Assembly (NCBI GenBank): GCA_001179505.1
Contig: CDMY01000531.1
Location: 124,001 to 188,000, forward strand
Reading direction: 5' to 3'
Source of the DNA: Vitrella brassicaformis CCMP3155
Taxonomy: Eukaryota; Protista; Chromerida
Length of the DNA: 64,000 bases
Under the pieces are notes generated by a model, which did no database searches, was not told the DNA's origin, and saw nothing but the letters and a program-made list of their open reading frames with translations. Positions 8,367 to 62,794 of the stretch are shown in pieces. Numbering within the stretch: position 1 is the stretch's first letter; every line of letters begins with the position of its first letter. The translations under genes and the position numbers were made by a program.

Positions 8367-10699
8367 ATGATGAGCTGCATGTATCGCATTTTTTGTCCGG
8401 CCACCGACGGCCGGATCCTTTCTTCATCGACTTCATCTTCATCGCCGCTGCCCCGCTCCCGCCCCCTCCCCCTCTCGCTCTCTCTCGTGATGCTCACGCT
8501 CTCTCTCTCAACAACATCGCTACTGCCCCTGACTTCGGCCCTCCCACTGGTTGGCCGTGGTGTTGTTGGTGGTGGTGTTGGGCCACTCAACCGCAACGGG
8601 CGCCGCCCCGCCATCCCTGAGGACGTCAAGGTGACTGACGGCCTGTGCAACCTCAACAATCCCTGTGTGCCCACGGCCAACTGCACACTCACCGTGCCTG
8701 TGGTGGGCAAGATGGTGTGCGAGTGTCCCAAGGGTTTCCAGGGTGACGGCAAGAAGGCGGGCACCGGCTGCCAAGACGTGGACGAGTGCAAGGCGGGAAC
8801 GCACACGTGTGGGTCTGAGAAGGACGGGGCCATGTGCAAGAACACCGAGGGGTCCTTCGAGTGCGGCTGCCAAAAGGGGTGGGAGAAAGGCAAGGGCGGC
8901 AAGTGCTTCGGTGAGTGAACAGCCAGCCAGGGAGGGACGGAGAGGGGTGGATGGCGATCGATTGACGCGGATGTGGGGTGGGTGGTTCGTTCAGACGTCA
9001 ACGAGTGCGCCAGTCCTCTGACCAACACGTGCGGTGGCGATAGTACATGCACCAACCTACCTGGTACCCGACCATAAACGCCTCTCTCACCCACGTGCAC
9101 TTCTCACTCTCTCCATCGGCTTGATTGATACAGGCACGTATCGGTGCGACTGTGGTGACAAGACGATGAAGGCGGCGCTCAACGGCACGTGCGTCGACCT
9201 CAACGAGTGTGAGGACGAGGACGGCAAGTACAACGCATGTGCGCAGAAGTGCAAGAACACACTTGGGGGCTTCACCTGCTCGTGCAACGAGGGGTACACA
9301 CTCAACGCCGACGGCCATGCATGTGACGGTGAGCCCGTGATCGCCCAACTACACATGGCACATGGTGGCCCATGACGGCTGGTGTGTGGCATGGTGCAGA
9401 TATCGACGAGTGCACCGCGGGGACACACAAGTGCGGTCAGCACAAGTGCGTCAACTCGGTGGGGAGCTACCGCTGCGAGTGCAGTGCCGAATTGGGATAC
9501 CAAGGGGCGGAAGACGGAGTCACCTGCATCAGTACGCTCTCTCACAGCTTTTCCTGCCGACCGATCAGACACACAGGATGGTCTCCATGTGATGTGTCTG
9601 TAGATCTGAATGAGTGCGCCATGAATCCCAACATCTGCGGTCGTGAGAACTGCTGCATGGACCTGGAGCCCGAGCGGGGCCGCTACAACTGCAGCAGGGC
9701 CATTGCCGTCCCCTCAGCATCATCATCACTCTTCCGCTCACCACTGCAAACAGCAACAGCAGCCACCCACGGCACCGTCTCCGCCCTTGGGGCAGGCGCA
9801 CCATCAGCATCATGCGTCGGCCTTCTCTGCCCGGCCCATCAGCGCATCCAGCAGCAACAGGCAGAGAGAGAAGCCATGGCTCAGATGCTCGCGGCTGCCA
9901 GTGCCGGTGCCCCTGGTGCTGGTGCCGTGAAGTGCCTGGAGCGAGACGTCGAGTACCAGGGGTGGGACATCCGGACGACCGACGGCGTCATGGCAGTGGC
10001 CGATTGCCAGCAGGCGTGCCGGAAGGACCCCGGGTGCGACTTCTTCTCTTACCGTGCCGAAAGGAGCCTGTGTGAGCTCAAGGCCTCCAACGCGGGACGT
10101 ACACAGAGCGGAGGCGTCGTTTCCGGACCCAAGGTCTGCCCACAGGTTATGCAGGCCATGGGCGGAGCACTACCAAGACAAAGTAAGCACCCCTGCACCC
10201 CCCTCTCTCCCCCCCAACGCACCACCATCCCTCCCTCCCTCCCTGTGTGTTGTCTCATCGTTCCTCAGGGTATCCCCGCTTTGGCGGTCGTCGCGGCCGT
10301 GGCCTTCAGCCTCTTCAGCGCCGGTCAGAGGTGATGTGGTCGTGTCCTGAGGGCTACAAGTACGCCTCCGACTGGGCGAGAGAGAAGAAGAAAGAGCGGC
10401 GGCAGAACTTCGTCGACACCGTGGTCAAGGAGACGTCCGTCCAGGACCTCGGCAGCCTCGCCACCGACAACGTCTTCTCCGACCTTGCCTCAGCCGGGCT
10501 GACCGGGCTGATCAAGGGCAACAAGACGGAGTCGGGCCAGCAGCAGCAGCTAGGCCAGGGTGAGCAGGACGGCACTAGCAGCACTCTCCCCGTTTCGTCA
10601 ATGATGCCCAAGGCGCCTAGCGGTCTGGCGGGTTTCCTAGACTCGTTGCTGGCGAGCGACGTCGAATTCAGCGATGTAAGTTGGCCGTGGGAGACGTAG
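8367..10699 (+). CDS. Secreted calcium-binding EGF-repeat plus PAN/Apple domain protein (microneme-adhesin-like), multi-exon
   Basis: Hydrophobic signal-like stretch LSLSLVMLTLSLSTTSLL. Repeated D[VIL][DN]EC...CxNTxGS[FY]xCxC units, with phase-1 introns before the D. PAN motif CLERDVEYQGWD..DCQQACRKDPGCDFFSY..CELK..VSGPKVC. TAG at 10697-10699. Confidence 0.85.
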
Positions 10700-12358: not shown

Positions 12359-13771
12359 TCATTCAAGCAGCAGCCCATCCATGTCGTCATATTTCTGTGT
12401 GTCTCGCATGAATCTCTCCCAAACCACATCCCACAGCGCATCACTCGGGTCATCAGGCATGTTCGCAGGCCCGCTCGACTTGCGTACTCTCGCCCGCAGC
12501 CACCGATACAGCCGCATATCCATATCCTTCGCCTCCCCTTCACTCCGGGCCGCCGCTTCCATGTCTCTCAATCCAATGGCGTCCAGAGAATCCATAAAAG
12601 CCCCAAGCACAGCCAATGGACAGATGTAATCATCTTTTGGGTCCCCTGTGTCCGTCTCGCACTCCCATTTGATCTCCCAAATGTGGTTGAGATGGCGGAA
12701 AGCCATGAAGAGGTGCATCGTTGGGGCGGGGTCGAATTCGGTGGCTTCCACGGGACACACGTGGACGAACAGGTCCATTTCGAAGAGCAGTTTCCTTAGC
12801 TCGGGCACATCCTCCGCTTCCCATGCTTTAGTATCCATGTCGATGTCAGGCTTGCTCTTTTCGCCACTGTAGATGTCCTCTGCTTCCCAAGCCCGGCGGG
12901 CTTTCCCTCTCCGCTGCTTTCTTGTTGCTGGCGGCCTGTGCTTTTTTGCGTCGGCCGCTATCTTTTCGGGGTCGATCCAGCCGGTCAGGGGCGTCGCTTC
13001 GATGACGGCGAACAGGAGACCTGCATCATTCACATGGGATCAAGGATGGAGGGAAACCAACAACCCCGACCTGCAGCAAGAGAGCTTACGTCGACTCTGC
13101 TGTGGGGTCTCAAGATTCCGTTCTTTCATCCTCTGCAGCATTGCTGCATGCCTCCGCCCCACGTCGGTGTTGGCCATACTCCTGCCCGCCTGCCAGGTCC
13201 AGAACATTTCCCGGCCCTTGTGACAAACCCACAGATACCGAGACCAAGGGGAGTAGCTTACAATTTGTGTCGTTTGGGTGGCATACCTTGATGCGCATGG
13301 CGTTCAAGGCAGCTTTCTCCCATATGTCTTTCCTCATATTCGTCTTGGGACACGTGTAGAGGTGCTCCGAGAGGCCGGGGACGTCTCGGTAGAGAGTCGT
13401 TTCGAATCTCACCAGGCCGGGCCGCTTCACTTGCTCTGCTGGAGGCTTGATGTTGAGCCTCTTGTTTATCTTGTCCTGAAGGTGGTACCGGATGTTTTTC
13501 TGCATGCCCAGCCGGCTCCCCAGTTCCGTCCTGTGGATGTTCTCGACGAACTCGATGAAGAGCTGGCTGACTGCACTGGAGACCAACCTGTATCATGTCA
13601 CACAGACACAGCTGATCAGACCAAGGAAACCTTTCTTGTGCGTTCACACCTGTAGGATAACGTCGCCACAGTCAAGGTTGCCGCGATGGAAGGAGAAAAT
13701 GCGACGAGGCTCCTTCCGTCACGCTCATCTTCCTTCGCCGTTTCGACGGCGGGACCATTCCATGACGCCAT
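12359..13771 (-). CDS. Hypothetical protein, about 4 exons
   Basis: Protein-like ORFs 13110-13586 and 12359-13033 join through GT-AG introns (..SYR|LVSSAV.., ..MRIK|GREMFWTW.., ..QSR|..LLFAVIEA). No family recognised with certainty. Confidence 0.6.
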
Positions 13772-13878
13772 GCACCGGCAAGAAACGAACCCCAGCAGCA
13801 GCCAGATGGTGACGGTCATTGCAAAGAGGCACGCTGACGTAGTTTTCATCAGCCCTTCTGCCCTTCTGCCCCCCGAGC

Positions 13879-13894
13879 AGTTTCACGGAATGCC
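13879..13894 (-). promoter_or_regulatory. Candidate cis-element TTCCGTGAAAC, copy 1
   Basis: GGCATTCCGTGAAACT on the minus strand, between the divergent starts at 13771 and 14034. Confidence 0.45.
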
Positions 13895-14033
13895 CCCGGC
13901 AAGCCCGCAAAGAGTTGCTGAACAACAGGGCACACCAGGTATGCACAGAGGCCCGCAAAGACTCCCAGTGAGCCGAAATCATCTTCCTCTGTCATCCTCT
14001 TTGGAATTCAGGCTGCATCTTCGCATCTTCCTC

Positions 14034-14975
14034 ATGTCGGTGGTGTTCTCGGAAGGTGCGTCGCCATCAGTAGTGACGATGGACGCCGATGTGCTCCTCT
14101 CCCTCTCCCAAGACCACCGCCACACGCAGCAGGCGCTCATCGAGGAGCTCACCAGGCAGCGCGATGAGTTGAGGGGTGAGCTCGGTGACTACAAGCGACG
14201 GCTGGAGGCGGCAGAGCAACGCGATCGAGACGCGGAGGCCCACATGAGGCTGCTCGAGGCCCAGCTGGCGAGGGAATCGGCACTCAGGACGGAGGTGCAG
14301 CGGCAGAGGGACGAGTACCTAGCAGAGCGAGATGAGCTGAAGACTGAGCGTGATGCCTATCGGCAGAGGCACGATCAGGCGGAGCAGCATCGTCATCAGG
14401 CGGAGGCACGCAGCCAGGAGCTTGCGACTGAGCTGGCTCGTCAGAAGGAGAATGACGCTGGCCCGCTCGTCCCCAAGACGATCGTGTGGAGTGGCGGACT
14501 GTATTACGGCACCGTGCAGGACGGCAAACCTCACGGCAGTGGCGTGCTGCGGACACTGGACGGGAGCCGCAAGGTATACGAGGGAGACTGGATGGCGGGC
14601 TGCCGTCAAGGAACTGGCACAGCATACTGGTCGAACGGCGGCGCACGCAAAGGCCAGTGGGCAAGTGGGCAGATGGTGGGCGAGGGGAGAGCCGACAAGA
14701 TGCCCTTGGGGGGCGGCACCACATACACTGGCCCACTGCTTGCCGGCAAGCCTCATGGCCACGGCACCAGCTACCATCAGAATGGCAACAAGCTGTATGA
14801 GGGCCAGTGGGAGAATGGACAGCGATACGGCATCCTCTTCGATGGTCAGTGGAACAAGGGTTTCGCTCCCGAGGGGACATTCTACCCTAGCTACTCTCAG
14901 CAACACGACTACGGAGGGCCCCCTGCGTGGGTGCCCAGCAGCATGACGCCAACATACCCTTACCACACCCCCTAG
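14034..14975 (+). CDS. Coiled-coil plus MORN-repeat protein, intronless (subfamily A)
   Basis: Start MSVVFSEG is chosen because the paralogue at 30304 starts the same way. Long E/Q/R heptad region, then MORN units (YYGTVQDGKPHGSG, YEGDW..GCRQGTG, YEGQWENG). Confidence 0.85.
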   Translation: MSVVFSEGASPSVVTMDADVLLSLSQDHRHTQQALIEELTRQRDELRGELGDYKRRLEAAEQRDRDAEAHMRLLEAQLARESALRTEVQRQRDEYLAERDELKTERDAYRQRHDQAEQHRHQAEARSQELATELARQKENDAGPLVPKTIVWSGGLYYGTVQDGKPHGSGVLRTLDGSRKVYEGDWMAGCRQGTGTAYWSNGGARKGQWASGQMVGEGRADKMPLGGGTTYTGPLLAGKPHGHGTSYHQNGNKLYEGQWENGQRYGILFDGQWNKGFAPEGTFYPSYSQQHDYGGPPAWVPSSMTPTYPYHTP

Positions 14976-15370: not shown

Positions 15371-16758
15371 TCACGCGGCCCCAGACTTGACAGAGCCAGG
15401 TGTGGACGGCGTCACGCCCCTCATGGCCACATCCACAGCGCCCTCATCATCCACTGCCATGCCAAACATAAACCTGCTCGCCACATCCGGCGTCCCCTCT
15501 CGCTCGAACGACCGCCGCACCATCTGGTCAGCCGTCAACAAAGTCGACTTGGGAGCCGGCCTCTTCAGCTTCGCTCCCGCGGCAGCCGCAGTGCCCGCCA
15601 GATAGAGCGTCCCGTCGCTCTTGATGGCCAGCCGCTTGGCTATGGCGCTGTAGCTGTTGTGAGACTCTGCAAGCGCCTTTGTGTGTGTCTTCTCGTCAAG
15701 GATGAGCTCGAGATGGGCGAGGGAGGGGGGCAGGGTGGGTGAGGGGGCTTCTTCCGAGTCGGCGGTGATGGTGAGGGTGCGGCCGTCGACCAGGAACTCA
15801 ATCAGGTAGAAGCGGCCATCCAGCTTGCGGCCCTCTTTCAGCACGCGCCTGCAACCAAACAAGCACAGAGACATGCAGACAGACGGCAGAGACATGACGT
15901 CATGAAAGCGCATGCATCCCTAGCGGCCTGTTACCGTGGTCCCGCTTCGCCTGCCTTCTTCTTGGCCCTCTTCTGCGTCGATGCGGCCGAGGGGCCGCCC
16001 ACCATTCCCGCCTTCATCACACTGCTGGGCTCACTCTGTACCCACCGGTGACTCGCCATGCCATCCGTCTGTGCCATCCCACCCTCAACCGTCGTGTGGT
16101 GGGGCTTCAATGGCGGCAGCCTCACCGCCTCCCGTGGCTTGCGGGCGCCGAGCGTCACGGGGAACTCGCATATGTTGTTAAGGTACCTTTCCTGCTCGAC
16201 GGCGGCCTGCACCCACTCCCTGTGGTTGTAGACGGGCCGCACCCTCTCGAGCCGCTTGAGCAGCCGGTGGTTCTCGTGTGTGATGCGGCCGACCTCCTTC
16301 TTGCGATATTCACGGTTGAGGGAGACGGGGCCGGGCACGCTGCGGATGGCACTGAAGGTGGGCTTGCGCATGATCTCCGCCATGCGCCTGCACGCCAGGC
16401 AGAGAAAGACACGACCATGAGAGGCCCCGACAGACAGCCAGTCACCCATTCCCCCACGCACCTGAGTAGGAATTTGTTTTCCCTGTCGATTGCGGCGTAG
16501 TGCTCTTCGAGCATTATCTCCCGCTTGCGGTTGGACAGCAGAAAGGTGGGGCGGGTGGGCTCCTCGTTGTCGATGTACCCCTTCATGCCCTGGGTGCACC
16601 CCATGCATCCCGTTCACACTCGGACATTCCACTGCGTATGTACATCCACACGAGTACATCATCATACGTACCTTGAGTCGTCGTTCGTGCCTCTCCTGGT
16701 CCTCCTCCTTCCATTTCTTGCTGCAGATTTTGCTGGCGCACGGGATGGAACGAAACAT
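15371..16758 (-). CDS. CFAP97/Hemingway (KIAA1430) domain protein, multi-exon
   Basis: HERRLK|GMKGYIDNEEP..NRKREIMLEEHYAAIDRENKFLL|RRMAEIMRK..SLNREYRKKEVGRITHENHRLLKRLERVRPVYNHREW matches the family pattern. A further exon reads RVLKEGRKLDGRFYLIEF. Confidence 0.8.
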
Positions 16759-17346
16759 GATGGCGGGGGAGAGACAGGTAGGCCTCTTCGAGGCCGAATA
16801 CGGAGGGGATAGAGTTACAGGAGGGGCCCGAGAAAAGAGTCTGCCAAATTGCCCGGTGCGGTTGCCTCTGCCTGTCAGCTGCTGAAGGGCACAACTGACG
16901 ACAAGCAATGAGTGTGCTGCTCGGCGATTTCGAGACCTGGGGGGCCTGTGGGGGACGGCGTCTGCATGCATGCATCGAACAAATAATGCATTCACAACGC
17001 ACGAAGAAAGCATCCATTCTTAATTAGAGTCCGACTATCGATCCTACTATGACTGGGCATGTCTACAGATGAGCACTTGCTATGCGAACGCCAGCCGATC
17101 TGTCATGGCTTCGACAGAAGAAGGGCTGTCGTCCGCAGGGCAAATCTCATCTGCAGCTGATCCACACCCAGATCACCCGGCCTGCTCCCAGCCACTGACC
17201 ACCCATCCACCCTTTCACTATCCCAGTAATCTACTAATCATCTGGCCACAACAGGCGGCCATTAAGTCCCACGGAAAAAGGGTGCAGCAGCAGCCAGCAG
17301 CCCGCCTTATCGTGTGTCTGTGCACAGAGGTGCTCTCTGCGTATGC

Positions 17347-29209: not shown

Positions 29210-30304
29210 CTAGCGTCGGTCGACCAGTGCAAGCGTCGAACGCTGGGACGGCAGGCCATCCGTGATCACAGCAGGGGCTCCCTTCACCCACTGCCCCTCG
29301 TGCCGTACAGCCCCACGGCCGTCCTCGAGCTTGCCTCTGCCGTGGGGCTCGCCGTTGAGGGTCTGACCGGTGTACCGCATCTTGCCGTCTTGGCCCCATG
29401 GGTGGCGCGTCATCTCCCCCTCGCCGTGCATCTTGCCAGCCACCCAGCCGCCCGTGTATGTTTGGTTGCTGTTCACGTCGTACAGCGTGCCCTGGCCGTG
29501 CCTCTTGCTGCATATCCACTGCCCGTCGTACTCCACGTCGCCGTTTGCCTGGTGGCTCGTGCCCTGACCGTTGTAGTGGTCCTGCTTCCACTGACCACTG
29601 CACTTCGCTGGGTTGCTTTGGCTGTTGTAGTACCAGTAGTAGCTGGTGCCGGCCCCCTGGCGACAGCCCGCCCTCCATTCTCCCTCGTATAGCTTGCGGC
29701 TCCCGTCCACTGTCCGCAGCACCCCCGCCCCGTCAGGTTTGCCGCCGAGCAGGGACCCGTAGTAAAGCCGGCCACCCCACACAATCGTCTTGGGGACGAG
29801 CGGGCCACCATCGGACTCCTCCCGACGAGCCAGCTGAGCCGCAAGCTCCTGGCTGCGTGCCTCCGCCTGACGACGCCGCTGCTCCGCCTGATCGTGCCTC
29901 TGCCGAGAGGCATCACGCTCTGCTCGGTACTCGTCCCTCTGCCGCTGCACCTCCTCAATCAGGCGCTGCTGTGTCCGCTGCTGCTCCAGCAGCTGCTGCC
30001 GCACCATCTCTGCACTGATGTCACCGACCTCAGATGACGCCGACGTCGACGTCACAGCCGAGTCCTGGACCCGCTGGGCCTCGAGGTCCCTGATCTGGGC
30101 CTGCGCCTGTCGGTTGCGCTGCTCCGCCTCATCCAGCCGCCGCTTGTAGGCATCGAGCTCACCCCTCAATTCATCACGCTGCCTGGTGAGCTCCTCGATG
30201 AGCTTCTGCTGTGTGTGGGGTTGGTCTTGGGAGAGGGCGAGGAGCACATCGGTGCCCATCGTCACCACAGAAGGCGACGCACCTTCCGCGAACACCACCG
30301 ACAT
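29210..30304 (-). CDS. Coiled-coil plus MORN-repeat protein, intronless (subfamily A)
   Basis: MSVVFAEGASPSVVTM..LIEELTRQRDELRGEL and GPLVPKTIVW are near-identical to the 14034 paralogue, followed by multiple MORN units. Confidence 0.85.
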   Translation of the reverse strand: MSVVFAEGASPSVVTMGTDVLLALSQDQPHTQQKLIEELTRQRDELRGELDAYKRRLDEAEQRNRQAQAQIRDLEAQRVQDSAVTSTSASSEVGDISAEMVRQQLLEQQRTQQRLIEEVQRQRDEYRAERDASRQRHDQAEQRRRQAEARSQELAAQLARREESDGGPLVPKTIVWGGRLYYGSLLGGKPDGAGVLRTVDGSRKLYEGEWRAGCRQGAGTSYYWYYNSQSNPAKCSGQWKQDHYNGQGTSHQANGDVEYDGQWICSKRHGQGTLYDVNSNQTYTGGWVAGKMHGEGEMTRHPWGQDGKMRYTGQTLNGEPHGRGKLEDGRGAVRHEGQWVKGAPAVITDGLPSQRSTLALVDRR

Positions 30305-31185
30305 GGGAAGATATCCACTGGGCTGCTGATTGATCCGGGCCCCAAGGTTTGAGCTCGCTAGTTGGGGGCGCGACCTCCCCCCTTGAGGCAAGGAAAAGCT
30401 CACCCTCCCGTCCACGCGCATTGCCACAGTGAATGAAGTTGGCGAGATTTCTCTACGAGAGACAAATCTCGCCGAGAGACAAAAAGGAGACAGACCATTC
30501 TTTTGGAAATCGATTTCATCCACACAGCTCCCATTTCCTCAGCTTCTGCCCTCTCTCGCTCGTATCTGCTCCATTTTCGCCTCTCTCCGCCTGGTGTTTG
30601 CCTCACATGCCTCGCCACGGCCTCTCCCAAGACACCCTGCAAACGCGCACTTCAGACGTCACTTGTCCCTTCCCCGGGTGAGCGCTGGCGCCACGTGCGT
30701 GTGTTTTGTGGAAGCGCACACGAGTATGTGTGCGCTGCAGTGCGCACCCTAAGTGGCCAGTGCTGCCCCGTACTCCGAAACCACGAAACAGTATGTTGAG
30801 AGTATGGCAGAAGACAGCCATTTCTTCACTGACCACCATGCTCTCTGACGTGTTGACTTCTTTGGTCCTCTGCTCACAGACCATCGGCCTGATTTTATAC
30901 CATCACACTCGCGCATCGAGCAGCTATACGTAAGAATCATGGACAGCACGAGTTTGGTCCCTGCACCGGGCAGCGTGTTTGTGCACACAGGTCGTCACCG
31001 TCAGCAAGTACCACTCCTGCCGGTCCCTACGGTGACCCTCTCGCTCATCCTGCTCGCCTCATGGTCGGACGACACCGTCAACAGCCTCTTCGTTGTCCTT
31101 CGCTTGTCGTGGCGAGATTTCTCGACGAGAGACAGAAGACGAACCATAAAAGTGTTTTCTCTATAAATAACGATGTCATCTCCTC

Positions 31186-45900: not shown

Positions 45901-48075
45901 TGCACATCGAGTGTGTGTGTGTGTGTGGTCAGACTTTTGACCATATTCAGAAGGAGCCGATGATGCTCCGACTACGAGCACCCATCAAGGGTACGTCTCT
46001 GGGGGGGGAGGGGGAGAGGGGGAGGGGCCGGCCACCAGACACACCCACACTGCCTCTCTCTCTCTGTCTGTGTGTGTGTGTGTGTGCAGTGTATGGCGAC
46101 ATCCACGGCCAGTTCCCGGACCTGATGCGTCTGTTCAAGGCGTTCAAGGCGCCGCACGACCTCAACGAGGATGGCGACATCGACACGCTCGACTACCTCT
46201 TCCTCGGAGACTACGTCGACAGGGGCGCTTACAGGTGAGTGCCCCGCCCCCATCGATGAGATGAGTGTGTGTGGGTCACCCGCACGGGCTGTTTCTTCTC
46301 TTGTCAATCGGTCAGCCTGGAGACCATGTGTCTGCTCTTCGCTCTCAAGGTGAGAGACCTCCCTCCCGGCCTGACGTCGCCTTCATCTGTGTGTGGTGGA
46401 TGTGTGTGGTGGATGTGTGTGTGCAGTGTCGGTACCCTGCCCAGATCCACCTCATCCGGGGCAACCACGAGGACCGCACCATCAACCAGATCTACGGCTT
46501 CAGGGACGAGTGCAGAAGGCGACTCGGCGAAGGTGCGCGCTCGGCTGGGCACCTCATTGATTGGTTTGATGGGTCGTCGTCGTGTTTCGCCGGTTCTGCA
46601 TTCAGACCCCGACCACCACGCGTCGTGCTGGAGCAAGTTCAACAAGTGCTTCGAGTGGATGTCTGTCGGGGCGATCATCGAAGTAAGTAACGAAACCAAC
46701 ACGACACCGCCACACACTCGCGAATGGTTGCCTTTGCCCTGCCCTGCAGCACCGTATTCTGTGCATCCACGGCGGCATCGGTGGCGCCATCCACACCTTG
46801 GACGACATCGGCTCGATGCAGCGGCCGCTCGTCGTGGCGCAGGTGCCCTCCACCGATCAGGAGCAGAAAGTCACTGACCTACTGTGGAGCGACCCAACGG
46901 TAAGTCCACGCCGTCCCCCCCCCCCCCCCCCCCCCCCCCNNNNNNNNNNNNNNNNNNNNNNNNNNNNNNNNNNNNNNNNNNNNNNNNNNNNNNNNNNNNN
47001 NNNNNNNNNNNNNNNNNNNNNNNNNNNNNNNNNNNNNNNNNNNNNNNNNNNNNNNNNNNNNNNNNNNNNNNNNNNNNNNNNNNNNNNNNNNNNNNNNNNN
47101 NNNNNNNNNNNNNNNNNNNNNNNNNNNNNNNNNNNNNNNNNNNNNNNNNNNNNNNNNNNNNNNNNNNNNNNNNNNNNNNNNNNNNNNNNNNNNNNNNNNN
47201 NNNNNNNNNNNNNNNNNNNNNNNNNNNNNNNNNNNNNNNCCCCCCCCACACACACACACACGTCGCCTTCATCTGTGTGTGGTGTGTGGTGAATGATGGT
47301 CGCAGGACAATGACTCGATAGAGGGCGTGACGGTCAACGAGACGAGGGACCCTGACGGCAGCGGACGGATCGTCAAATTCGGTCAGACAGGGAGGGAGAG
47401 GATTGCTATACTATGTGTGGTTGTCAAAAAGAATGTGTGTGTGGCATTCTCGTGTGTGTGTGTGTGTGTGTGCAGGTCCCGATCGTGTTCACGAGTTCCT
47501 GAAGAGCAACGACCTTTCCATGATCATTCGGTGAGACCTACCTGTCCCTCCCTCCCTCATGCGGATGAGGCTGACGTGTTGGGCCGGTGTTGTATTGTGC
47601 TGTGCAGGGCCCACGAGTGCGTCATGGACGGATTCGAGCGATTCGCGGGCGGCAAACTCATCACCCTTTTCTCGGGTGAGTAAACCACACAGACACACGC
47701 ACACACCCCAACCCCACACACGCCGCGCCTTGATGCCTCCTTGTCTCGTGTTGAATCGTGTGTGTCACCACACACACAGCGACTGACTATTGCGGCCACC
47801 ACAAGAACGCCGGTGCGTTGCTCTTTATCCGGCGGGACCTCACTGTCGTGCCCAAGATCATATACCCCACCGAACGGAGCCATGCTGTCTGGTACGAATG
47901 TGGGGGTGCGTCAACAACACCCAACCACACACACACACACGGTTGACATGTACCTTTGTTTGTGTGTCGGGGTGTGTGTGTGTGTGTGTGCAGGGACAGT
48001 GCCATCACCCAGGCGCGTCCCCCCACCCCCCCGCGGCCATTGCCGAGAGCGAGGAGGGAGGACTTCCCTTCGTGA
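42947..48075 (+). CDS. PPKL: Kelch-repeat Ser/Thr protein phosphatase (PPKL / BSU1-like), multi-exon
   Basis: Kelch repeats ([33 protein letters not shown]). PPP motifs [44 protein letters not shown]-terminal RPPTPPR, with TGA at 48073-48075. Confidence 0.95.
46940..47239. other. Assembly gap (300 N) flanked by poly-C, inside a PPKL intron
   Basis: N run with C homopolymers on both sides, directly after the donor following DLLWSDPT. Confidence 0.95.
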
Positions 48076-54031: not shown

Positions 54032-55744
54032 TCATTCATTGGGCAGCCAGTCAGGGATCCTCCCACAGTCGTTGTGCAGCTCCGTCTTGACGCCCCATCT
54101 GATGGTCTGACCAGCCCCCCACGGCTGGTAAAACGGAAAGCCGCGGTGCTTAGGGTAAAGTGTCCCATCCTGCGGCTTCCCCTTCGCGAAGTGTCCCTCG
54201 AATACCACCCCAGTCCATTAAGAAATGCACGAGTAGACCTTACCCTGCTGCCACTGCCCACTCTCCCACTGCCCCTCGTACTTCTTCTTGCCGTTGTCGT
54301 AATACGAGGTGCCCGTGCCGTGTTTGTGTCCGCACAGCCACTCTCCCTCGTACGCCTCGTGCCCATTGTGATGATAGCTGGTGCCCTGGCCTTCTGGTTT
54401 GCCATTGCGCAGCGGGCCTGTGTAGGTGGTGCCATCCTCCAAGGGCATCTTGTCGGCTCTCCCCTTGCCCACCATCTGGCCATGCTCCCACCGGCGATTG
54501 CAGCAGCCGCCGTTCGGCCAGTGTGCCGTCCCGCTGCCGTGAGCGATGCCGTTGAGCAGAGGGCCTTCATAGTGGTACCCCTCCCACGGCAGCCGATGAG
54601 CCGTGCCCTCTCCGACCATCTCGCCGGCAGACCACTGCCCCTCGCAGGCCGTGGAGCCATCTGAGCTCTTCAGGAGTATGCCGCGGCCGTGGGGTATGCC
54701 GTTGAGCAGAGGGCCAGTGTAGGTGGTGCGTCGATCACCAGAGGGCATCTTGTCCGCTGTCCCCTCGCCGACCATCTGCCCATGCTGCCATGTGCCTGTG
54801 GACGTGCCGCCGTTCGGCCATCGCGCTGTCCCCTGGCCGTGTGGCTTTCCATTGTGCAGAGGGCCGGTGTAAGTCTTGCCGTCCCCTAGAGGGATCTTGT
54901 CGGCGGTCCCTTCGCCGACCATCTGCCCCCCCCGCCATCCACCCCGGTAGAGCTGAGAGCCCCTCGAGTCGTACTGGGTGCCGTGGCCGTCATACATGCC
55001 ACTCACCCAATGCCCCTGATACTCCACATGGCCATTGGCGCGGTAGCTGACGCCCTGACCATAGTATTTCCCGTCCCTCCACTGGCCCTCGTACTTCTTG
55101 TTGCCATTATCGTGATACGAGGTCCCTTCGCCGTGCATCTTTCCATTCTTCCACTGCCCCTCGCACTCCATCCTGCCATTGGCGCGGTAGCTGGTGCCGT
55201 GGCCGTGCATCCTGCCGTCTGCCCATTGTCCCTCTTTCTCCTTGGTGCCATTCTGATCGTAGCTGACGCCCTGACCATGGTACTTGCCGGATTTTCACTG
55301 ACCATCATACTTCTTGGTCTTGCCGTTTTCATGATAGCACACGCCGACTCCCTCATACTTCTCAACAGCCCACTGCCCCTCGTAGATCTTCTTCTGCCCG
55401 TCCATGTCGGTCTGCTTGCCGGGGCCGTGCGGACGGCCGTTCTTGACGCGGCCATAGTATTTGCTGCCGTCATCCAGGATGAGCTCGACGGGCTGACGCT
55501 CACTCGCTGCACGCAGCTGAGCCAACTCGGCCTCAAGCTGCCTGTTGCGCTGTTCTGCCTGCTCCAGCTGCCGTGTGAGCATCTCCACCAGACGAGCCTG
55601 TGTCCTCATGTGTTGTTCGGCCTGCATGCGGATCTCCCGCTCGGCCACGTCGGTGAAGGCACTCGACGAGGCGGCATCAGGAAGAGTGAGGTCCGCAAGC
55701 TGACCCTCGAGCTGCTCAAGCCGCCGACGCAGCTCCTCCATCAT
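54032..55744 (-). pseudogene. Coiled-coil plus MORN-repeat gene (subfamily B) with two in-frame stops
   Basis: Single frame from ATG 55744 to TGA 54032-54034. TGA at 55295-55297 (KYDGQ*KSG, where the other repeats have W) and TAA at 54218-54220. Homology to the 60167 paralogue continues past both stops. Confidence 0.8.
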
Positions 55745-55880
55745 CAAGTTGCGGCGCAAACGATGCTGCTGAGTCGGTTGGTTGGTTATTGTGTTTAACG
55801 GGACTCGTGTCTGTAACCCCGAGGGGATCCTGTCCAGGTCAAGCACTCGGTGAATGCGCTCGGGGAGGTGATGGCAAACG

Positions 55881-55893
55881 TTCCGTGAAACCG
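55881..55893 (+). promoter_or_regulatory. Candidate cis-element TTCCGTGAAAC, copy 4
   Basis: TTCCGTGAAACCG between the divergent starts of the MORN gene (55744) and ART-1 (56116). Confidence 0.45.
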
Positions 55894-56115
55894 TTCTCAC
55901 TAGCTCGCAAGAGGAGAGCGGAGAAGAGGAGAAAAGGCACGAGGAAGTGAGGAGGGGGTTGCTCGGGCCTTCTCAGCCTCCGCCACCATGGATCAGCGTG
56001 CGAGGAACCACTGGAGGAAGAAGGCGCTTCGCTACACGGTAAGAGCATGAGGGAGGGACACCTGGGAGATCCCGCCTTCATTTTCGTTGCTGTCGTTGTG
56101 CGGTAGGTCTACCAC

Positions 56116-56967
56116 ATGTACAAGGCGATGGCGGAGTGGAATCAGCGGGAGGTGGATTTCCTCACACGGCGGTTCGCTCTCGACCGACATCACGAAGACG
56201 AGATGCGGTTGTTCGAGCGAGTGGTGAAGCTAACCCTTCGTCACATAGAGGACCTCACTGGCAATATCGAGGAGCTCGAGCGCATGGAGGCCAAACTGAC
56301 TGAGGAGCTGCAGCAGCTGGAGGAGGCCACAGTGGTGCTCGTGGATGACATCTCTGCCCAGCACGAGCTGAACCGCCTTCATCGTGAGGCCATCCAGGCC
56401 CTCGATAGCGCCATCGCGGCGCTCCAGGAGCGGCGCCGGGAGCTGGAGAGGACCCACCGCAGCCTCACCTTGATCGAGCGGCAACAACAGCAGCGCAAGC
56501 AGGCCTTGCTGCTCAGCAACGAGCAGCTGACACAGCGCAAGAGGGCTGTCCTCAAGCGCAAGGAGGACCTCCAGCGGCGCATTCAGCAGGAGTGCATGAA
56601 GGCGAGCAGCAACGGGGCGGCGGTGCTGTACCACCAGACGGACCACGCAGGCGCCCACAGCCTGAAGGCCCACGGCGTCGATATGAGCAGGTGTCGGTCG
56701 ATTGGGTGGGGCAACATCAGCATCCCGGGGTTCTTCTGTGCGAGCACCGAGGCCATCACGAGCCAGCCTGACAAGGCCCAGCGTCGGGGCTGGATGGTCA
56801 AGCTGCAGGTGCGGCTGGGGCGCGTGAGGGAGCTGCACACGGGCCCCAGCCCTGCTGACGGCGACTTCGATAGCGTGGTGATTCAGACGAACACTGGTTT
56901 GGAGTTTGTGGTCACCAGAGCTGAGCAGGTGACCGTGACAGAGATCTATCCCGTGGGGAGCAGATAG
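56116..56967 (+). CDS. Coiled-coil protein with a C-terminal PARP/Gig2-like ADP-ribosyltransferase domain (ART-1), intronless
   Basis: About 160-aa heptad region, then VLYHQT..PGFFCAS..MVKLQVRLGRV..FDSVVI..LEFVVTRAEQV. The order and spacing match the H-Y-E clade ART core. Confidence 0.75.
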   Translation: MYKAMAEWNQREVDFLTRRFALDRHHEDEMRLFERVVKLTLRHIEDLTGNIEELERMEAKLTEELQQLEEATVVLVDDISAQHELNRLHREAIQALDSAIAALQERRRELERTHRSLTLIERQQQQRKQALLLSNEQLTQRKRAVLKRKEDLQRRIQQECMKASSNGAAVLYHQTDHAGAHSLKAHGVDMSRCRSIGWGNISIPGFFCASTEAITSQPDKAQRRGWMVKLQVRLGRVRELHTGPSPADGDFDSVVIQTNTGLEFVVTRAEQVTVTEIYPVGSR

Positions 56968-57258
56968 GGGGGAGGAGGGACAGTGGCCTCGTGCTCTTGT
57001 GTCGGCCGTCTGAGGATCTGGACGGTCTCTGCTTGTGCTTGTTCATGTGTGCTGCATGGGCGTGCGACGCGATTGGCGTTTATTCAGTGTGGTTTGTGTG
57101 CGCTGTGGTGCCGATTCCTTCATGTGCGTGGATGGCTTCCGTGTGCATGTGTGACCCATGTGACATTTATTGCATCTTGATCGATCATTGATGAGTCTAA
57201 CAGACATGAATCATGACACACCACACCCAGACATTGCGCCCTCCTTCGGGCCCCCTCG

Positions 57259-58269
57259 CTAGCCCTGATAGGTGGAGATCACCTCCACCTGGTCACCGCT
57301 ATACACGACAAACTCCAGGCCATGGCGATCCGTCACTATCACGGAATCGAAGCCACGCTGCTTCACCCGCCTCTCGTCGAGCTGGCTGTCTGGACCCCTC
57401 CCAAGCTCCAGAGGCCGCCCGAGCCGCAGACCCACCTTGACAATCCAGTCAGTGTGCCCCGGCTGGTGACGAACCTTGTGCCTCGTCAGGTCCGGGCGCG
57501 ATGCGCAATAGAATCCCTTGCCCGCGTAGCCGTTCGAGCACCGGTTGATGTCGACCCCATGGTTCTCGATGTTGAGGGCGTGCTCTCGAGTGGTACGATG
57601 GTAGGCAATGATGCCGTAGGGGCACTGCAGGCAGAAGTGGCCGGAACGGCGCCCTCGGTTGTTGGGGCAGCGGGGGGTGTGGCGGCCGCTCGCATAGCGC
57701 CGCAGCTCCTGCTCCAACCGCCTCACGTTGGCCTCCTCGTCTGCCACCTCGTTGCGAGTCGACTGGACCTGCCTCTGCCGCGCCTCGTTCTCGGTGTTGA
57801 GGCGCTGGACCTCCCGGCTGAGGGCGTCGTTGGAGCGAGAGAGATCTTCGTTGGCGTCCTCCTGTCGCTGCTTTCTCGCCTCCTTCTCCTCCTTGATGCT
57901 CGTCAGTCGGTGCCCCTCAGCCACAGCCATCGAGTGCTCCTCACGCAACCTCTCCTGCAGCGCTTGCTGTTCGCCGATCTGGCTCCTCAGCTTCTCATTC
58001 CCCACCATCAGTGCGGTCTTCCTGTCCGTGAGGGTCCCCTCCCGCTGACGCGCGTCATCCAGACGGCCTTGGATCTCCACACGCTCAGCCGTGTGTCGCT
58101 CGGCCTGCTGATTCGCTGACTTGGTGTGGCGGTGGAGCTGTTCCGACGTGAGATCAGCGTCCCACTGCCTCAGCTTGGCCTTGAGGCGCTCCATGCTGCC
58201 TCTCCTGCGGTCAGAGTTGGTGGAGGAGGGACGGGAAGAGGGGGAAGATGACGGGAGGGGAAGATGCAT
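57259..58269 (-). CDS. Coiled-coil protein with a C-terminal PARP/Gig2-like ADP-ribosyltransferase domain (ART-2), intronless
   Basis: Heptad region, a Cys/His cluster, then IAYHRT..YAGKGFYCAS..IVKVGLRLGRP..GFDSVIV..LEFVVYSGDQV. Compare PARP FGKGIYFA and NEYIVYDIAQV. The start could be ATG 58269 or 58194. Confidence 0.8.
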   Translation of the reverse strand: MHLPLPSSSPSSRPSSTNSDRRRGSMERLKAKLRQWDADLTSEQLHRHTKSANQQAERHTAERVEIQGRLDDARQREGTLTDRKTALMVGNEKLRSQIGEQQALQERLREEHSMAVAEGHRLTSIKEEKEARKQRQEDANEDLSRSNDALSREVQRLNTENEARQRQVQSTRNEVADEEANVRRLEQELRRYASGRHTPRCPNNRGRRSGHFCLQCPYGIIAYHRTTREHALNIENHGVDINRCSNGYAGKGFYCASRPDLTRHKVRHQPGHTDWIVKVGLRLGRPLELGRGPDSQLDERRVKQRGFDSVIVTDRHGLEFVVYSGDQVEVISTYQG

Positions 58270-58504
58270 CAAAGACGATTGACGACGGTCCGCCAACCTA
58301 CCTACCAAGGACTCGGAACAGCCGGAGGCTCACTTCACACACCGGTTTCATCTCATACCCTAAACCACATCTGAAGGGGTGGCCCTGTGCAGCCTACATG
58401 ACCGAAAAAGGCAGCTGTCCTGCTATGCATCTATCCGTCCGTCTATCTTATTGTTGCTCGTCAGCTTGCATGTCAGTCAGTCAGGCAATCAGTCGATCAG
58501 TCAG

Positions 58505-59706
58505 TCAGAAGGGCTTTCTACACAGGGGACACCTCGGTTTCGGCTCTGGCTGGCCATCCATCTCGCCCCGCCCACCCGCCAGAATGCGCTTATGACACGA
58601 CGCACAATAGCATGTGCAACCTGACACACACCCATGCACATTCAAAACGGCACAGCGAAATGTAGGTCCGTGCGAGTATCCGTGTGAGTGTCTGACTGCG
58701 TCTGCTGCTCACCACATGGCAGCTTCACAGCCTTTGGTTCGGACCAGCATGCCATGCAGACTCGTTCCCTCTCCTGCTCGGCCCTCTCGGCCTCCACTCG
58801 CTGCGACTCGGCCGCGGCCTTGAGCTGCGTCAATCGGGTCATTTCTGCATTGATGTTGCCGACGAGGCATGACAGCTCAGCAGCGCTGATGTGCTGCAGC
58901 CGGTCGCCACGAAGCTGAGCCCCGTCCAGTGCGGCATTCTGCCGACCCAGACGGTCATTCTCGCTCTCGAGGGAGTGGATGGAGCTCTCGCACGTGCGGA
59001 TGGTCCGGCGCAGCCCCGCGATTACAGTGTTCTTGAAGGCGCTGGCCTGCTCGAGTGACTCGAGAGTGGCCCCTTTCGCCTGGATGACGCTGTCCCTCTC
59101 CTGAATGGCCTTGTCCTTCTCCGATATCACCATGTCCTTCTCGCTGACACACGGACACAAGACGAGAAACAGTAAAGATGGAGAACGGGCCTCCATATCT
59201 CTCTGTGTGTGTGAATGGATGCAGACTTCAGGGTGCTCTTCTGCGTCTCGATGAGCTTCTGCAGTCTGTCAATCCTCTGAAGGGACAGCAAAGCGGCAAG
59301 GCATGAAAGATCAGTTCATATGCCCTTCCCGCCCCTCTCCTCTCTCGGTCTGTCACCTTGTGCGGTCCGACGAGCATCTTGAAGTATTTCGTCTTGCCCC
59401 GGTGTAGGCCACCGCCGTGCTCCTCCTTGTGCATCAACTCATCCTGCAGCAAGAGGGAAGGCCCGTACTCATCTGCACTTATGTGTTTTGTCCGCAACAC
59501 ACCTCCTCTTCCTTCCTGAGGGCCTTGAGCGCCTGTAGGTGTTTCTTCGAGCGCTCGTGTGACGCCAGCTGCCCTTCGCTGCGGTAGTGTTTGTTGCAGA
59601 TATCACAGTAATAGATGAGGACATCGCCGCCATGCTCGTCGTCACTGGACTCATCAGAGTAGGGGCTGGGGTCCATGATCTCCCCCTCACTCCTCTCCGA
59701 GCTCGC
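58505..59706 (-). CDS. C2H2 (JAZ/dsRNA-type) zinc finger, coiled coil and RING-like E3 ligase, 5' end in the gap
   Basis: YYCDICNKHYRSEGQLASHERSKKH; coiled-coil exons; VCMACWSEPKAVKLPCG|CTCYCASC..CPLCRKPF* with TGA at 58505-58507. All joins are GT-AG and phase-consistent. Confidence 0.75.
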
Positions 59707-59709
59707 ACG

Positions 59710-59745
<36 letters not shown>

Positions 59746-60045
59746 NNNNNNNNNNNNNNNNNNNNNNNNNNNNNNNNNNNNNNNNNNNNNNNNNNNNNNN
59801 NNNNNNNNNNNNNNNNNNNNNNNNNNNNNNNNNNNNNNNNNNNNNNNNNNNNNNNNNNNNNNNNNNNNNNNNNNNNNNNNNNNNNNNNNNNNNNNNNNNN
59901 NNNNNNNNNNNNNNNNNNNNNNNNNNNNNNNNNNNNNNNNNNNNNNNNNNNNNNNNNNNNNNNNNNNNNNNNNNNNNNNNNNNNNNNNNNNNNNNNNNNN
60001 NNNNNNNNNNNNNNNNNNNNNNNNNNNNNNNNNNNNNNNNNNNNN
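59746..60045. other. Assembly gap (300 N) flanked by poly-C
   Basis: N run with long C homopolymers on both sides. Confidence 0.95.
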
Positions 60046-60166
60046 CCCCCCCCCCCCCCCCCCCCCCCCCCCGGCGGCCCCTCCCCTCTCCTCCTTTTTT
60101 TCTGGGGAGGCCATCCTCCCCCGAGCGCATTCACCGACTCAGCAGCATCGTTTGCGCCACAAATTG

Positions 60167-62464
60167 ATGATGGAGGAGCTGCAGAGGCGACTTGAGCGCC
60201 TTGAGGGGCAAGTTGCGGAGCTCACAGTCCCGGAAGATGCAATGACGAACGCTATGGCACAGCACCAACGGTCGAAAGAAGAACTGGTGGAGATGCTCAA
60301 ACGGCAGCTGGAGCAGGCAGAACAGCGCAACAGGCAGCTTGAGGCGGAGTTGGCTGAGCTGCGTGAACTGGTTCACCGTCAGCCCGTCGAGCTCATTCTC
60401 GATGACGGCAGCAAATACTATGGTCGAGTCAAGAACGGCCGTCCGCACGGCCCCGGCAAGCAGACCGACACGTACGGCCAGAGGAAGATCTACGAGGGGC
60501 AGTGGACGGACGGCAAATACGACGGCATCGGTGTGTCATTCCATGACACGGCAAAGAAGTACGATGGCAGATGGAAGAACGGGCAGATGGTCGGCAAGGC
60601 AACAGCACAGGAGATGCCCTTGGGTGACGGCAGTATCTATGCCGGCCCCCTTCTGAATGGGAAGCCACACGGCCAGGGCACAGCGACGTGGTCAAATGGC
60701 GGCAGCTGCACGGGGGAGTGGGAGCATGGGCAGCTGACTGGCGAGGGGGGAGCCGACAAGATCCCTCTCGGGGACGGCGAGACTTACACCGGCCCACTGC
60801 ACAATGGAAAGCCACACGGCCAGGGGACAGCGAGATGGCAGAACCGCGGCACATCCACAGGCACATGGGAGCATGGGCAGATGGTCGGCAAAGGGACCGC
60901 CTACATGATTCCCTTGGGGGACGGCACCACCTACACAGGCCCGTTGCTTGACGGCAAGCCGCATGGCCAGGGTACGAGCTATTATCAGAATGGCAACAAG
61001 GTGTATGAGGGCCAGTGGGAAATGGGGAAGAAACACGGCCAGGGCATACTCTACAACAGCTCAGGATCCTCTCAGAAGCGAGACATGGTATGCGAGGGCC
61101 GGTGGGCTACTGGAGAGATGGTGGAAGAGGGCACAGCGCATCGGCTGCCATGGAAAGGCTATCACTACCAAGGACCCTTGCGCAACGGCATCCCTCACGG
61201 ATGCGGGACGGCACACTGGTCTGACGGCAGCTGCAAAGGCCGGTGGGCGAATGGCGAGATGGTCGGCGAGGTGAGAGCCGTCAAGATGCCCTTGGGGGAT
61301 GGCACCACCTACACAGGCCGGCTGCTTGACGGCAAGCCTCATGACCAGGGAACAGTGCAGGGCAGCATACAGCTAGAGGATCGCACCACCTATAGTGGGC
61401 CCCTACGCAACGGCAAACCACATGGCAGAGGGACAGCAAGCTTGCCGACCGGCGGTAGTTACACAGGGCACTGGGAGAATGGACTGCAGATTGCTGCTGC
61501 GGGGTGGGCGAACAAGCTGCCTTTGGCGGACGGCAGGCGCTATGACGGTTCCCTCTTCAACGGCATGCCTCATGGCTACGGCACCAGCTATCAACAGAGT
61601 GGCAAGAAGGATTACGAAGGGGAGTGGAGACACGGAAAGCAAGATGGCGAAGGGACTCAGTTCAACCACGCAAACGACTCAAAAGCCTTCGACGGGCAGT
61701 GGGTTGCCGGCAAGGTGGTGGGAGAGGGCAAAGCTCACCGGTTCCCGTGGGAAGTGTACGACTATGAAGGGGCCCTCCTGGATGGCAAGCCCCACGGCAA
61801 AGGGACGGCACACTGGTCAAACCCACGCACAGGATGGACGGGCAAATCCACAGGAAATTGGGCCAACGGACAGAAGGCGTCTGGTGATGGCAAGGCAGAC
61901 AATATGCCCTTGGAGGATGGCAGCATTTACACAGGCGCGCTGCTCGACCACAAGCCACACGGCCGGGGCACCAGCTATTGTCCGAATCGCAGAGAACGGT
62001 ACGAGGGAGAGTGGAGAGAAGGACAGAGGAACGGCAAGGGCATCAGCTATCAATCCGATGGCAAGACAAAGATGCATGAGGGCCAATGGGAAAATGGGCA
62101 GATGGTCGGTAAGGGGACAGTATCAAAGATGCCCTTGGAGGACGGCAAAGTCTATGATGGCCAAGTGCTCAATGGGATTCCACATGGCCAAGGCACTAGC
62201 TACACGGAATCCTACACCCACGGCGGAGGACCCCAGTCTAAAATGGACTTCAATGGAAGCTGGCAAGACGGGAAGTGGCATGGGCAAGGCACAGTCTGCG
62301 ACCGCAACGGCAAGTCAATGTTCGAGGGAAGATGGGAGGACGGGCTGCCGCAGGAGGGGACTTTCTTTCCTCATTCTGGTGGCTACAATCAGAAGTGGCG
62401 AGCTGGCGAACGGCTGCCTGCTGGCATCCCCAAGATGCTCCATGAGCGTTGGACGATACCCTGA
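60167..62464 (+). CDS. Coiled-coil plus long MORN-repeat protein, intronless (subfamily B)
   Basis: MMEELQRRLERLEGQVAEL..QPVELILDDGSKYYGRVKNGRPHGPG is shared with the 55744 paralogue, followed by more than 20 MORN-like units. Confidence 0.9.
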   Translation: MMEELQRRLERLEGQVAELTVPEDAMTNAMAQHQRSKEELVEMLKRQLEQAEQRNRQLEAELAELRELVHRQPVELILDDGSKYYGRVKNGRPHGPGKQTDTYGQRKIYEGQWTDGKYDGIGVSFHDTAKKYDGRWKNGQMVGKATAQEMPLGDGSIYAGPLLNGKPHGQGTATWSNGGSCTGEWEHGQLTGEGGADKIPLGDGETYTGPLHNGKPHGQGTARWQNRGTSTGTWEHGQMVGKGTAYMIPLGDGTTYTGPLLDGKPHGQGTSYYQNGNKVYEGQWEMGKKHGQGILYNSSGSSQKRDMVCEGRWATGEMVEEGTAHRLPWKGYHYQGPLRNGIPHGCGTAHWSDGSCKGRWANGEMVGEVRAVKMPLGDGTTYTGRLLDGKPHDQGTVQGSIQLEDRTTYSGPLRNGKPHGRGTASLPTGGSYTGHWENGLQIAAAGWANKLPLADGRRYDGSLFNGMPHGYGTSYQQSGKKDYEGEWRHGKQDGEGTQFNHANDSKAFDGQWVAGKVVGEGKAHRFPWEVYDYEGALLDGKPHGKGTAHWSNPRTGWTGKSTGNWANGQKASGDGKADNMPLEDGSIYTGALLDHKPHGRGTSYCPNRRERYEGEWREGQRNGKGISYQSDGKTKMHEGQWENGQMVGKGTVSKMPLEDGKVYDGQVLNGIPHGQGTSYTESYTHGGGPQSKMDFNGSWQDGKWHGQGTVCDRNGKSMFEGRWEDGLPQEGTFFPHSGGYNQKWRAGERLPAGIPKMLHERWTIP

Positions 62465-62794
62465 ATGGTTGGTATTAAAGCTCTAAAGCAGTGGGCCTGC
62501 ATGTGATCTGCATATGACATTGCTCACTTTGTAATATGAGCAATCGATCGGACTTTTGGCTTTTGTGTCTCTGGTTTCAATCCATACAAAGACAGAATTG
62601 CAAGAAGATATAAGAGAACACACAACCAAATTTCGTGGGTCTGTCATTCTGTCACCCTGTCTGACCACACATGCACATGCAATGCTATCCACAGATGGTC
62701 ATCATATCACCACACATGCCTCGATCGTGCCGTTGCTTGTTGCATCCGTGTACGTAGCAACAAAGAAACTCTCAGTCATCGATTGACTGTCGAT

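Follow-up and report, generated by a model that had tools for sequence, protein, structure and literature searches.

We examined five adjacent genes in a 64,000-nt stretch of the Vitrella brassicaformis CCMP3155 assembly (72.7 Mb in 1064 contigs), namely positions 124001-188000 of contig C531, which we refer to as the window. In order along the forward strand, the genes encode a MORN-repeat protein on the minus strand (MORN-A), a putative ADP-ribosyltransferase (ART) on the plus strand (ART-1), a second one on the minus strand (ART-2), a protein with a zinc finger, a coiled coil and a probable RING finger on the minus strand (ZnF-CC-RING), and another MORN-repeat protein on the plus strand (MORN-B). 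An earlier reading of the window, hereafter the original prediction, had joined all five into a cassette for defence or toxin immunity. The gene order and strands that it claimed are borne out by the open reading frames (ORFs), by Pfam matches and by RNA contigs, and so are the divergent spacers between MORN-A and ART-1 and between the RING gene and MORN-B. Because the layout recurs in the genome without the RING gene, we read the locus as a pair of ART genes set among MORN genes and not as a five-part cassette.

The two ART genes converge. ART-1 (55938-56967, plus strand) starts at an ATG at 55988 in a 5′ exon, is interrupted by an intron at 56039-56106 and ends with a stop codon at 56967. 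Its 303-aa product is identical to the database protein CEM20893.1, and its splice joint is present in three RNA contig sets; throughout, contigs of three runs with canonical splice joints were taken as RNA, and those of a fourth run, which showed no joints, as DNA. ART-2 (57259-58194, minus strand, ATG at 58194) encodes 311 aa and likewise lies on spliced RNA contigs. Each protein consists of a coiled coil followed by a C-terminal minimal PARP-like domain (approximately 56620-56964 in ART-1 and 57262-57612 in ART-2), and the two domains share 37% identity (E 3e-19). The coiled coils were recognized by a crude heptad scan and by sub-threshold Pfam matches to coiled-coil families.

Assignment of the ART domain rests on family-level comparison and on predicted structure. 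A profile built from an alignment of approximately 21 genomic ART copies was compared with the sequences of the Protein Data Bank (PDB) and found PARP3 (E 6e-6), then PARP13, PARP12, PARP4 and exotoxin A, with the motifs of the alignment and of the PARPs in register (His, G-x-G-x-Y-F-A and E-Y-x-V). An AlphaFold model of the ART-2 domain (predicted local distance difference test, pLDDT, 88.5; predicted template modelling score, pTM, 0.82) produced 202 Foldseek matches at E<=0.001, and the 50 listed were all PARP catalytic domains (template modelling, TM, score 0.6-0.7; probability 1.0). The fold of ART-1 was assigned by its homology to ART-2. Neighbours of the ART-2 domain in the ESM Atlas were PARP-like clusters of 100-140 aa from giant viruses, phages and fungi, with a structural TM of 0.70-0.82. 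These three comparisons show that both ART calls of the original prediction were right. A single-sequence phmmer search of the PDB returned a lipocalin as its sole match, which we judged to be due to chance.

Within the family, one of the 21 members matched Pfam PARP (E 0.2) and nine weakly matched ART-PolyVal below its cut-off (best E 2.3e-4). A profile search of 1.84 billion representatives recovered 2054 relatives, several of them above the Pfam PARP cut-off. The top matches were mostly Vitrella or metagenome proteins, and some of the Vitrella paralogues are automatically named ‘PARP catalytic domain-containing protein’ in UniProt. A word-index protein search with ART-2 returned the query itself and one JGI protein, and was uninformative as to which organisms carry relatives. 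Elsewhere, ART relatives carry C2H2 fingers, ankyrin repeats or somatomedin B; in the dinoflagellate Effrenium voratum, five proteins in tandem (CAJ1386253-57) each combine five C2H2 fingers with the same minimal ART domain.

In the alignment, His7 and Thr9 are invariant and Gly35, Thr45, Lys48, Asp91 and Glu102 nearly so. The H-Y-E triad is intact in ART-2, where the His lies in ‘YHRT’, the Tyr in ‘GFYCAS’ and the Glu in ‘LEFVV’, all aligned to the corresponding motifs of PARP3. In ART-1, the triad reads H-F-E: the His and Glu are kept, and Phe replaces the Tyr (‘GFFCAS’). Since an aromatic residue is retained, ART-1 may still be active, as far as its sequence indicates.

When the occurrence of ART genes elsewhere in the genome was analyzed, convergent ART pairs were found at the window locus on C531, twice on C331 and on C469. 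In all four pairs, one member has the Tyr and the other has Phe (window and C331) or Ser (C469) in its place. The first C331 locus (C331a, 44.9-51.0 kb) has the complete layout MORN(−) ART1(+) ART2(−) MORN(+), as compared with MORN(−) ART1(+) ART2(−) RING(−) MORN(+) of the window. At the second (C331b, 57.2-61.2 kb), the left MORN gene is absent and the order is ART1(+) ART2(−) MORN(+); at C469 (65.7-70.4 kb), it is MORN(−) ART1(+) ART2(−), followed by the end of the contig. C724 and C924 each have a single ART gene followed by a MORN gene on the same strand. The loci at C206, C86 and C738 hold a single ART gene each. Our tree divides the copies into 13 that form a coiled-coil class (support 100/99) and short forms in which the motif ‘GIYFA’ occurs. 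Within the coiled-coil class, the clades of ART-1 and of ART-2 have the same branching, (window, (C331a, C331b)), which indicates that the pair was copied as a unit. The window and C331 ARTs share 57-70% protein identity. Synonymous divergence (dS) between the window and C331 copies is approximately 1 or more, and the ratio of nonsynonymous to synonymous divergence (dN/dS) ranges from 0.13 to 0.33 for the ART domain, from which we conclude that both ART genes are constrained by purifying selection, and from 0.33 to 0.51 for the coiled coil.

The short forms make up a second ART class of eight genes of approximately 150-200 aa on C718, C801, C238 and C1064, which have the motif ‘G-x-G-I-Y-F-A’ and no long coiled coil; some of them form head-to-head pairs (C801 and C238). 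The tandem ART-to-MORN units of C924 (7475-9931) and C724 (390-4252) lie at contig ends. Their spacers and the 5′ parts of their MORN genes are 97-99% identical in inverted orientation, and C924 and C724 may be the arms of a single palindrome, centred on a divergent ART pair, that was split by the assembler. An RNA-recognition motif suspected from sequence on the ART-1-type gene of C331b was not confirmed by Pfam on the stop-to-stop frame.

The outer genes of the window locus are MORN genes in the classical sense. Tandem 23-aa repeats of the form Y-x-G-x-W-x2-G-x3-G-x-G exceed the Pfam cut-off in both. MORN-B (60167-62464, plus strand) encodes 765 aa, with a coiled coil at approximately residues 30-78 and at least 16 MORN repeats after it (Pfam MORN E 4e-58, 190 bits, 16 stretches). 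MORN-A (54218-55747, minus strand) has MORN repeats behind a short coiled coil, with a C-terminal piece that matches Pfam MORN over eight stretches (E 7e-32, 108 bits) and an N-terminal piece at E 0.0018. The original prediction regarded the two as inverted paralogues that share 5′ flanking DNA. Their paralogy is confirmed by inverted arms at 55318-55591 and 60284-60557 that are 86% complementary, and by N-terminal parts that are 67-72% identical at the protein level; the shared flank does not hold beyond approximately 32 nt upstream of the ATGs, with the inverted arm (I12) ending at 55778 and 60133.

MORN genes also accompany ART genes elsewhere. At six of the nine coiled-coil-ART loci, a MORN gene lies no more than approximately 1.5 kb away, divergent from the ART gene at C531, C331 and C469 and in tandem with it at C724 and C924. 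By a rough estimate that assumes roughly 100-200 MORN loci in 72.7 Mb, a random site would have a MORN gene within 3 kb in approximately 1-2% of cases; the 467 repeat candidates from a genome-wide MORN search are a minimum. ART genes thus adjoin MORN genes far beyond this rough expectation. The association is real but loose, and the idea of MORN proteins as fixed partners is not supported, because the MORN genes that flank different ART loci belong to different subfamilies. MORN-A and MORN-B group most closely with one another and with the MORN genes that lie, without an ART neighbour, at 115 kb and 227 kb of C531; the MORN genes of C331, C469, C724 and C924 form a separate group. Within a locus, the arms are mutual nearest relatives (MORN-A and MORN-B in the window, left and right at C331a, and C724 with C924, the last at 98% over 97 aa), and this similarity probably stems from gene conversion in palindromes. 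A fusion of the two domains was considered as a ‘Rosetta stone’, for which CEM37036.1 of C924 was the only candidate, and it was judged doubtful. To join the ART ORF to a coiled-coil MORN ORF, this 591-aa protein omits the ART stop codon and the six codons before it, and the ORF of an MMETSP transcript at the same locus (375 aa) ends at the very stop that is omitted; CEM37036.1 reflects either an annotation error or an alternative isoform.

The ZnF-CC-RING gene (58508-59676, minus strand) encodes 284 aa in five exons (59676-59503, 59443-59357, 59276-59227, 59143-58713 and 58620-58508). Each of its four introns is present in three RNA contig sets, and the exon phases close to 855 nt. The protein was translated and searched exon by exon. 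Exon 1 encodes a C2H2-jaz finger (zf-C2H2_jaz E 4.5e-10; 39.9 bits against PF12171, cut-off 22.6, and 39.7 bits against PF12874, cut-off 21.2), and a coiled coil lies in exons 3-4. Across the exon 4/5 junction runs a series of potential RING ligands, C-x2-C-x10-C-x-C-x3-C-x2-C-x22-C-x2-C, all of them Cys (C4C4), which is a pattern match only; exon 5 alone aligns weakly with two RING profiles over their second half, RING_XB3-XBAT31 (E 0.027) and zf-C3HC4_3 (E 0.054), both below cut-off. Of the domains named in the original prediction, then, MORN and C2H2 are confirmed by Pfam and ART by profile and fold; the RING finger, resting on the eight-Cys pattern and the sub-cut-off half matches, is probable but not proven.

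Several lines of evidence set this gene apart from the ART/MORN unit. The exon with the coiled coil and RING part has 15 other matches in the genome, all away from ART genes; only one of them, at 79.7-80.2 kb of C531, is on an ART contig, 100 kb from the pair. Flanks of 10 kb were scanned around the ART loci other than C1064, and no ZnF or RING match was found at any locus besides the window. At C331, the spacing between the ART-2-type gene and the MORN gene is 300-550 nt, which leaves no room for a RING gene, and it is this ART-2/MORN spacer that the RING gene occupies in the window. We therefore judge the ZnF-CC-RING gene to be a local addition and a bystander, and its proposed membership in a cassette is not upheld.

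Spliced RNA contigs of the three runs cover ART-1, ART-2 and the ZnF-CC-RING gene, and RNA contigs run unbroken from ART-1 via ART-2 into the RING gene. At 57228-58618, they pass over the stop codon of the RING gene (58508) and the start codon of ART-2 (58194), and the 290-nt interval between the convergent 3′ ends of ART-1 and ART-2 is bridged as well. The 3′ ends of ART-1 and ART-2 may overlap in antisense, and RING/ART-2 read-through transcripts may exist.

The spacer between the RING gene (ATG at 59676, minus strand) and MORN-B (ATG at 60167, plus strand) contains, by direct reading of the sequence, a poly-C tract (59706-60072) that holds a 300-N assembly gap (59746-60045), bordered by approximately 36 C on the left and 27 C on the right. 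The gap leaves the coding sequence of all the genes untouched, and long ORFs that read through it were dismissed as poly-Pro or poly-Gly artefacts. Three independent DNA contigs end within the C run, and RNA contigs end at 59681-59700. A second 300-N gap of the window (46940-47239) lies outside the five-gene locus. In the other divergent spacer, between MORN-A and ART-1, a search of the organism's own genome identified a dispersed repeat of approximately 75 nt (55773-55848), with 132 first-look candidates; the 40 that were scored are 90-97% identical and spread over many contigs. Contig depth rises approximately 100-fold over the repeat in DNA and RNA runs alike, and no tRNA, Rfam family or stable fold was found in it. 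The homology of MORN-A and MORN-B stops at the edge of the repeat, which is outside the module. Other genes of the window include two further MORN genes at 13686-14975 (plus strand) and 29210-30523 (minus strand), which share 55% identity, together with an EGF_CA/PAN-domain gene at 9372-10334 (plus strand) and a CFAP97-like gene at 15931-17013 (minus strand).

Among known systems, the Vitrella ARTs share their fold with the PARP/ARTD family (PF00644; for example human PARP3, PARP13/ZAP, PARP12, PARP4 and tankyrase). The Vitrella motif ‘YH(Q/R)T’ corresponds to PARP ‘WHGS/T’, ‘G-x-G-F/I-Y-x-A’ to ‘GKGIYFA’, and ‘L-E-F/Y-V-V’ to ‘SEYLIY’. A conserved Thr eight residues after the Tyr is, in our own reading of the alignment, in register with what we take to be Ser904 of PARP1. 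Unlike PARP catalytic domains of 170-200 aa, the Vitrella domain has approximately 115 aa and is without the helical regulatory domain and the long loops; it has Gln or Arg for the Gly of the PARP H-G-S/T motif and Lys where PARP1 has a second Tyr, and it follows an N-terminal coiled coil instead of WGR, zinc-finger, macro or ankyrin modules. In size and in its bare core it is like the minimal PARPs of giant viruses and phages (100-140 aa; ART-PolyVal, PF18760; Tox-ART-HYD1, PF15633), whose Atlas clusters also lie nearest to it in features (0.93-0.94) and in structure, with family matches below the cut-offs. In contrast to these, the Vitrella ARTs have introns, coiled-coil extensions and eukaryotic neighbours, and show no match in PHROGs; a direction of transfer is not inferable. 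The C331 pair shares the order and the Tyr/Phe split of the window pair, but is without the ZnF/RING gene and has MORN genes of another subfamily.

Two further likenesses are resemblances only. PARP9-DTX3L likewise combines an ART with a RING-type partner and an enzyme with a degenerate relative, but DTX3L has a Deltex C-terminal domain that was not found here, and no search linked the Vitrella locus to that system. The MORN-variant immunity proteins typified by Bacillus YwqK also have MORN-like repeats, and MORN-A has a sub-threshold match to MORN_2 (27.5 bits, cut-off 29.6). Unlike YwqK, however, the MORN proteins of the window are classical eukaryotic PF02493 arrays behind a coiled coil, without the gene logic of toxin and immunity.

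The reading that we favour, with moderate confidence, is that of a conserved tail-to-tail pair of coiled-coil mini-PARPs in a MORN-rich setting, which would form a heteromer of a catalytic and a degenerate subunit, with the RING gene as a bystander. Under this reading, ART-1 and ART-2 would join through their coiled coils as a hetero-oligomer, as modelling of the complex weakly suggests. ART-2 would be the catalytic subunit and ART-1 a degenerate and probably regulatory one, judging by their triads, and the complex would mono-ADP-ribosylate some target. The pair sits in a duplication-prone, MORN-rich region and, here and at C331, is part of a palindrome of two ART/MORN units, each with its divergent spacer; the MORN arms stay alike within a locus, probably by gene conversion, and differ between loci. 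The loose link of ART to MORN might then reflect common regulation or a common compartment. The score of the predicted complex of ART-2 with ART-1 was 0.56, and none of three controls exceeded 0.00, which rates as weak support. Runs agree in at least 84% of contacts, with a partner pLDDT of at least 81. In calibration, 51 of 78 solved complexes reached the mark for this score, against 2 of 108 mismatched pairs, and scores of 0.60 or under comprised 5 of the 78 solved complexes and all 4 of the passing mismatches (of 180).

A number of observations weigh against this reading. Pfam gave no ART or PARP match for ART-1 or ART-2, results staying below the gathering threshold. The controls for the complex were not coiled-coil proteins, and generic coiled-coil pairing is thus possible. 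MORN-A has an in-frame TGA at 55295-55297, at the position of a conserved MORN Trp in MORN-B and with both pieces in one frame; DNA and RNA contigs cover it without differences, and MORN-A is either truncated to approximately 150 aa or a young pseudogene that is still transcribed. The C469 pair has no resolved place in the tree, and its contig ends 70 nt past the ART gene, beyond which a RING gene could lie. C331a and C331b are recent tandem duplicates (dS approximately 0.1), and the recurrence is partly a matter of inheritance, the loci being related by segmental duplication. C206, C86, C738 and the four short-form loci on C718, C801 and C238 have no MORN gene in their 10-kb flanks, and the short-form locus of C1064 had no MORN match in the genome-wide MORN searches. 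Finally, MORN genes are abundant on C531, C331 and C469, so that adjacency by chance is more likely there, and the flanking MORN genes of different loci are not orthologous.

In a rival account, the genes would be neighbours by descent only and functionally unrelated, an old inverted ART duplicate pair having been copied along with adjacent genes and the two ARTs being independent of each other or redundant. We hold this account to be possible, though doubtful. The MORN density of the three contigs, the differing subfamilies at the flanks and the eight ART loci without a MORN neighbour all speak for it, as does a block of genes that are neither ART nor MORN, which C331 (51900-56800) and C924 (500-5800) hold in inverted order, with one ORF 65% identical over 339 aa. 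This common block indicates that ART loci spread by segmental duplication; it has no equivalent in the window. No ART-MORN or ART-RING fusion was found in the 150 best relatives except the doubtful CEM37036.1, and the neighbours of two non-Vitrella relatives are unrelated (transporter, CNOT11 and exocyst genes), as descent alone would have it. Such an account fits poorly with the two gene orders, divergent and tandem, in which ART adjoins MORN, with MORN genes on both flanks at two loci diverged to a dS of approximately 1, and with the split between Tyr and Phe or Ser in every pair; the score of the ART-1/ART-2 complex over its controls also counts against it, weakly. MORN proteins serve in basal-complex and radial-spoke structures, and coiled-coil MORN proteins are typical scaffolds of the alveolate pellicle, basal complex and cilia. 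It is conceivable that the coiled-coil ARTs are stage-specific regulators that modify MORN scaffolds in the cytoskeleton or flagellum. Coiled coils in all the proteins and the CFAP97-like gene in the window would agree with this, but the latter link is mere proximity at 40 kb and ART relatives carry other partner domains; we regard such a role as unlikely.

The five-part cassette of the original prediction, with MORN proteins as sensors or inhibitors, ARTs as effectors and a RING ligase as terminator, appears highly improbable to us. Its five genes exist, ART-1, ART-2 and the RING gene are transcribed, and the Atlas clusters nearest by sequence features are mini-PARPs of giant viruses. The family is expanded and clustered, with gene death (the stop in MORN-A and truncated copies), as conflict genes often are, and these traits are compatible with a role in conflict without showing it. 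Against the cassette, no other ART locus examined has the RING gene, while MORN genes occur beside coiled-coil ARTs at six of nine loci and beside short forms at none of those fetched, and no MORN partner is fixed. PADLOC reported only coiled-coil noise (JetC, LmuB and DruC segments, E>=7e-4) and PHROGs nothing. These results, the want of fusions, the unrelated neighbours of the two non-Vitrella relatives and purifying selection on the ART domain in place of an arms-race signal give no support to a defence or toxin-immunity module. A reduced version without the RING gene, in which a heterodimeric mini-PARP of an active and a degenerate subunit is co-regulated, by way of the divergent spacers, with interchangeable MORN sensors or inhibitors that gene conversion between the inverted arms keeps alike within a locus, as a palindromic four-gene module against viruses or other invaders, seems improbable as well. 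The original prediction thus holds in part: an ART pair accompanied by MORN genes exists and recurs, and a function in defence or toxin immunity is unsupported.

Beyond animals, fungi and bacteria, ADP-ribosylation has been little charted, and our searches of the open literature returned nothing on PARP-like enzymes in chromerids or on a link between PARP and MORN proteins. The practical yield of this work consists of corrected gene models and of the advice that the RING gene should not be counted in the unit; the defence reading is so far one of analogy. For the biology of the organism, the data indicate that Vitrella amplified a reduced PARP core, similar in size to those of giant viruses and phages, to approximately 21 copies, and that one branch of the family became fixed as a tail-to-tail coiled-coil pair in which one member is without the Tyr of the catalytic site. 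If the pair is indeed a heteromer of an enzyme and a pseudo-enzyme, it would provide a compact and tractable model for the regulation of minimal ARTs, and a starting point for the study of nicotinamide adenine dinucleotide (NAD) signalling in the free-living relatives of apicomplexan parasites.

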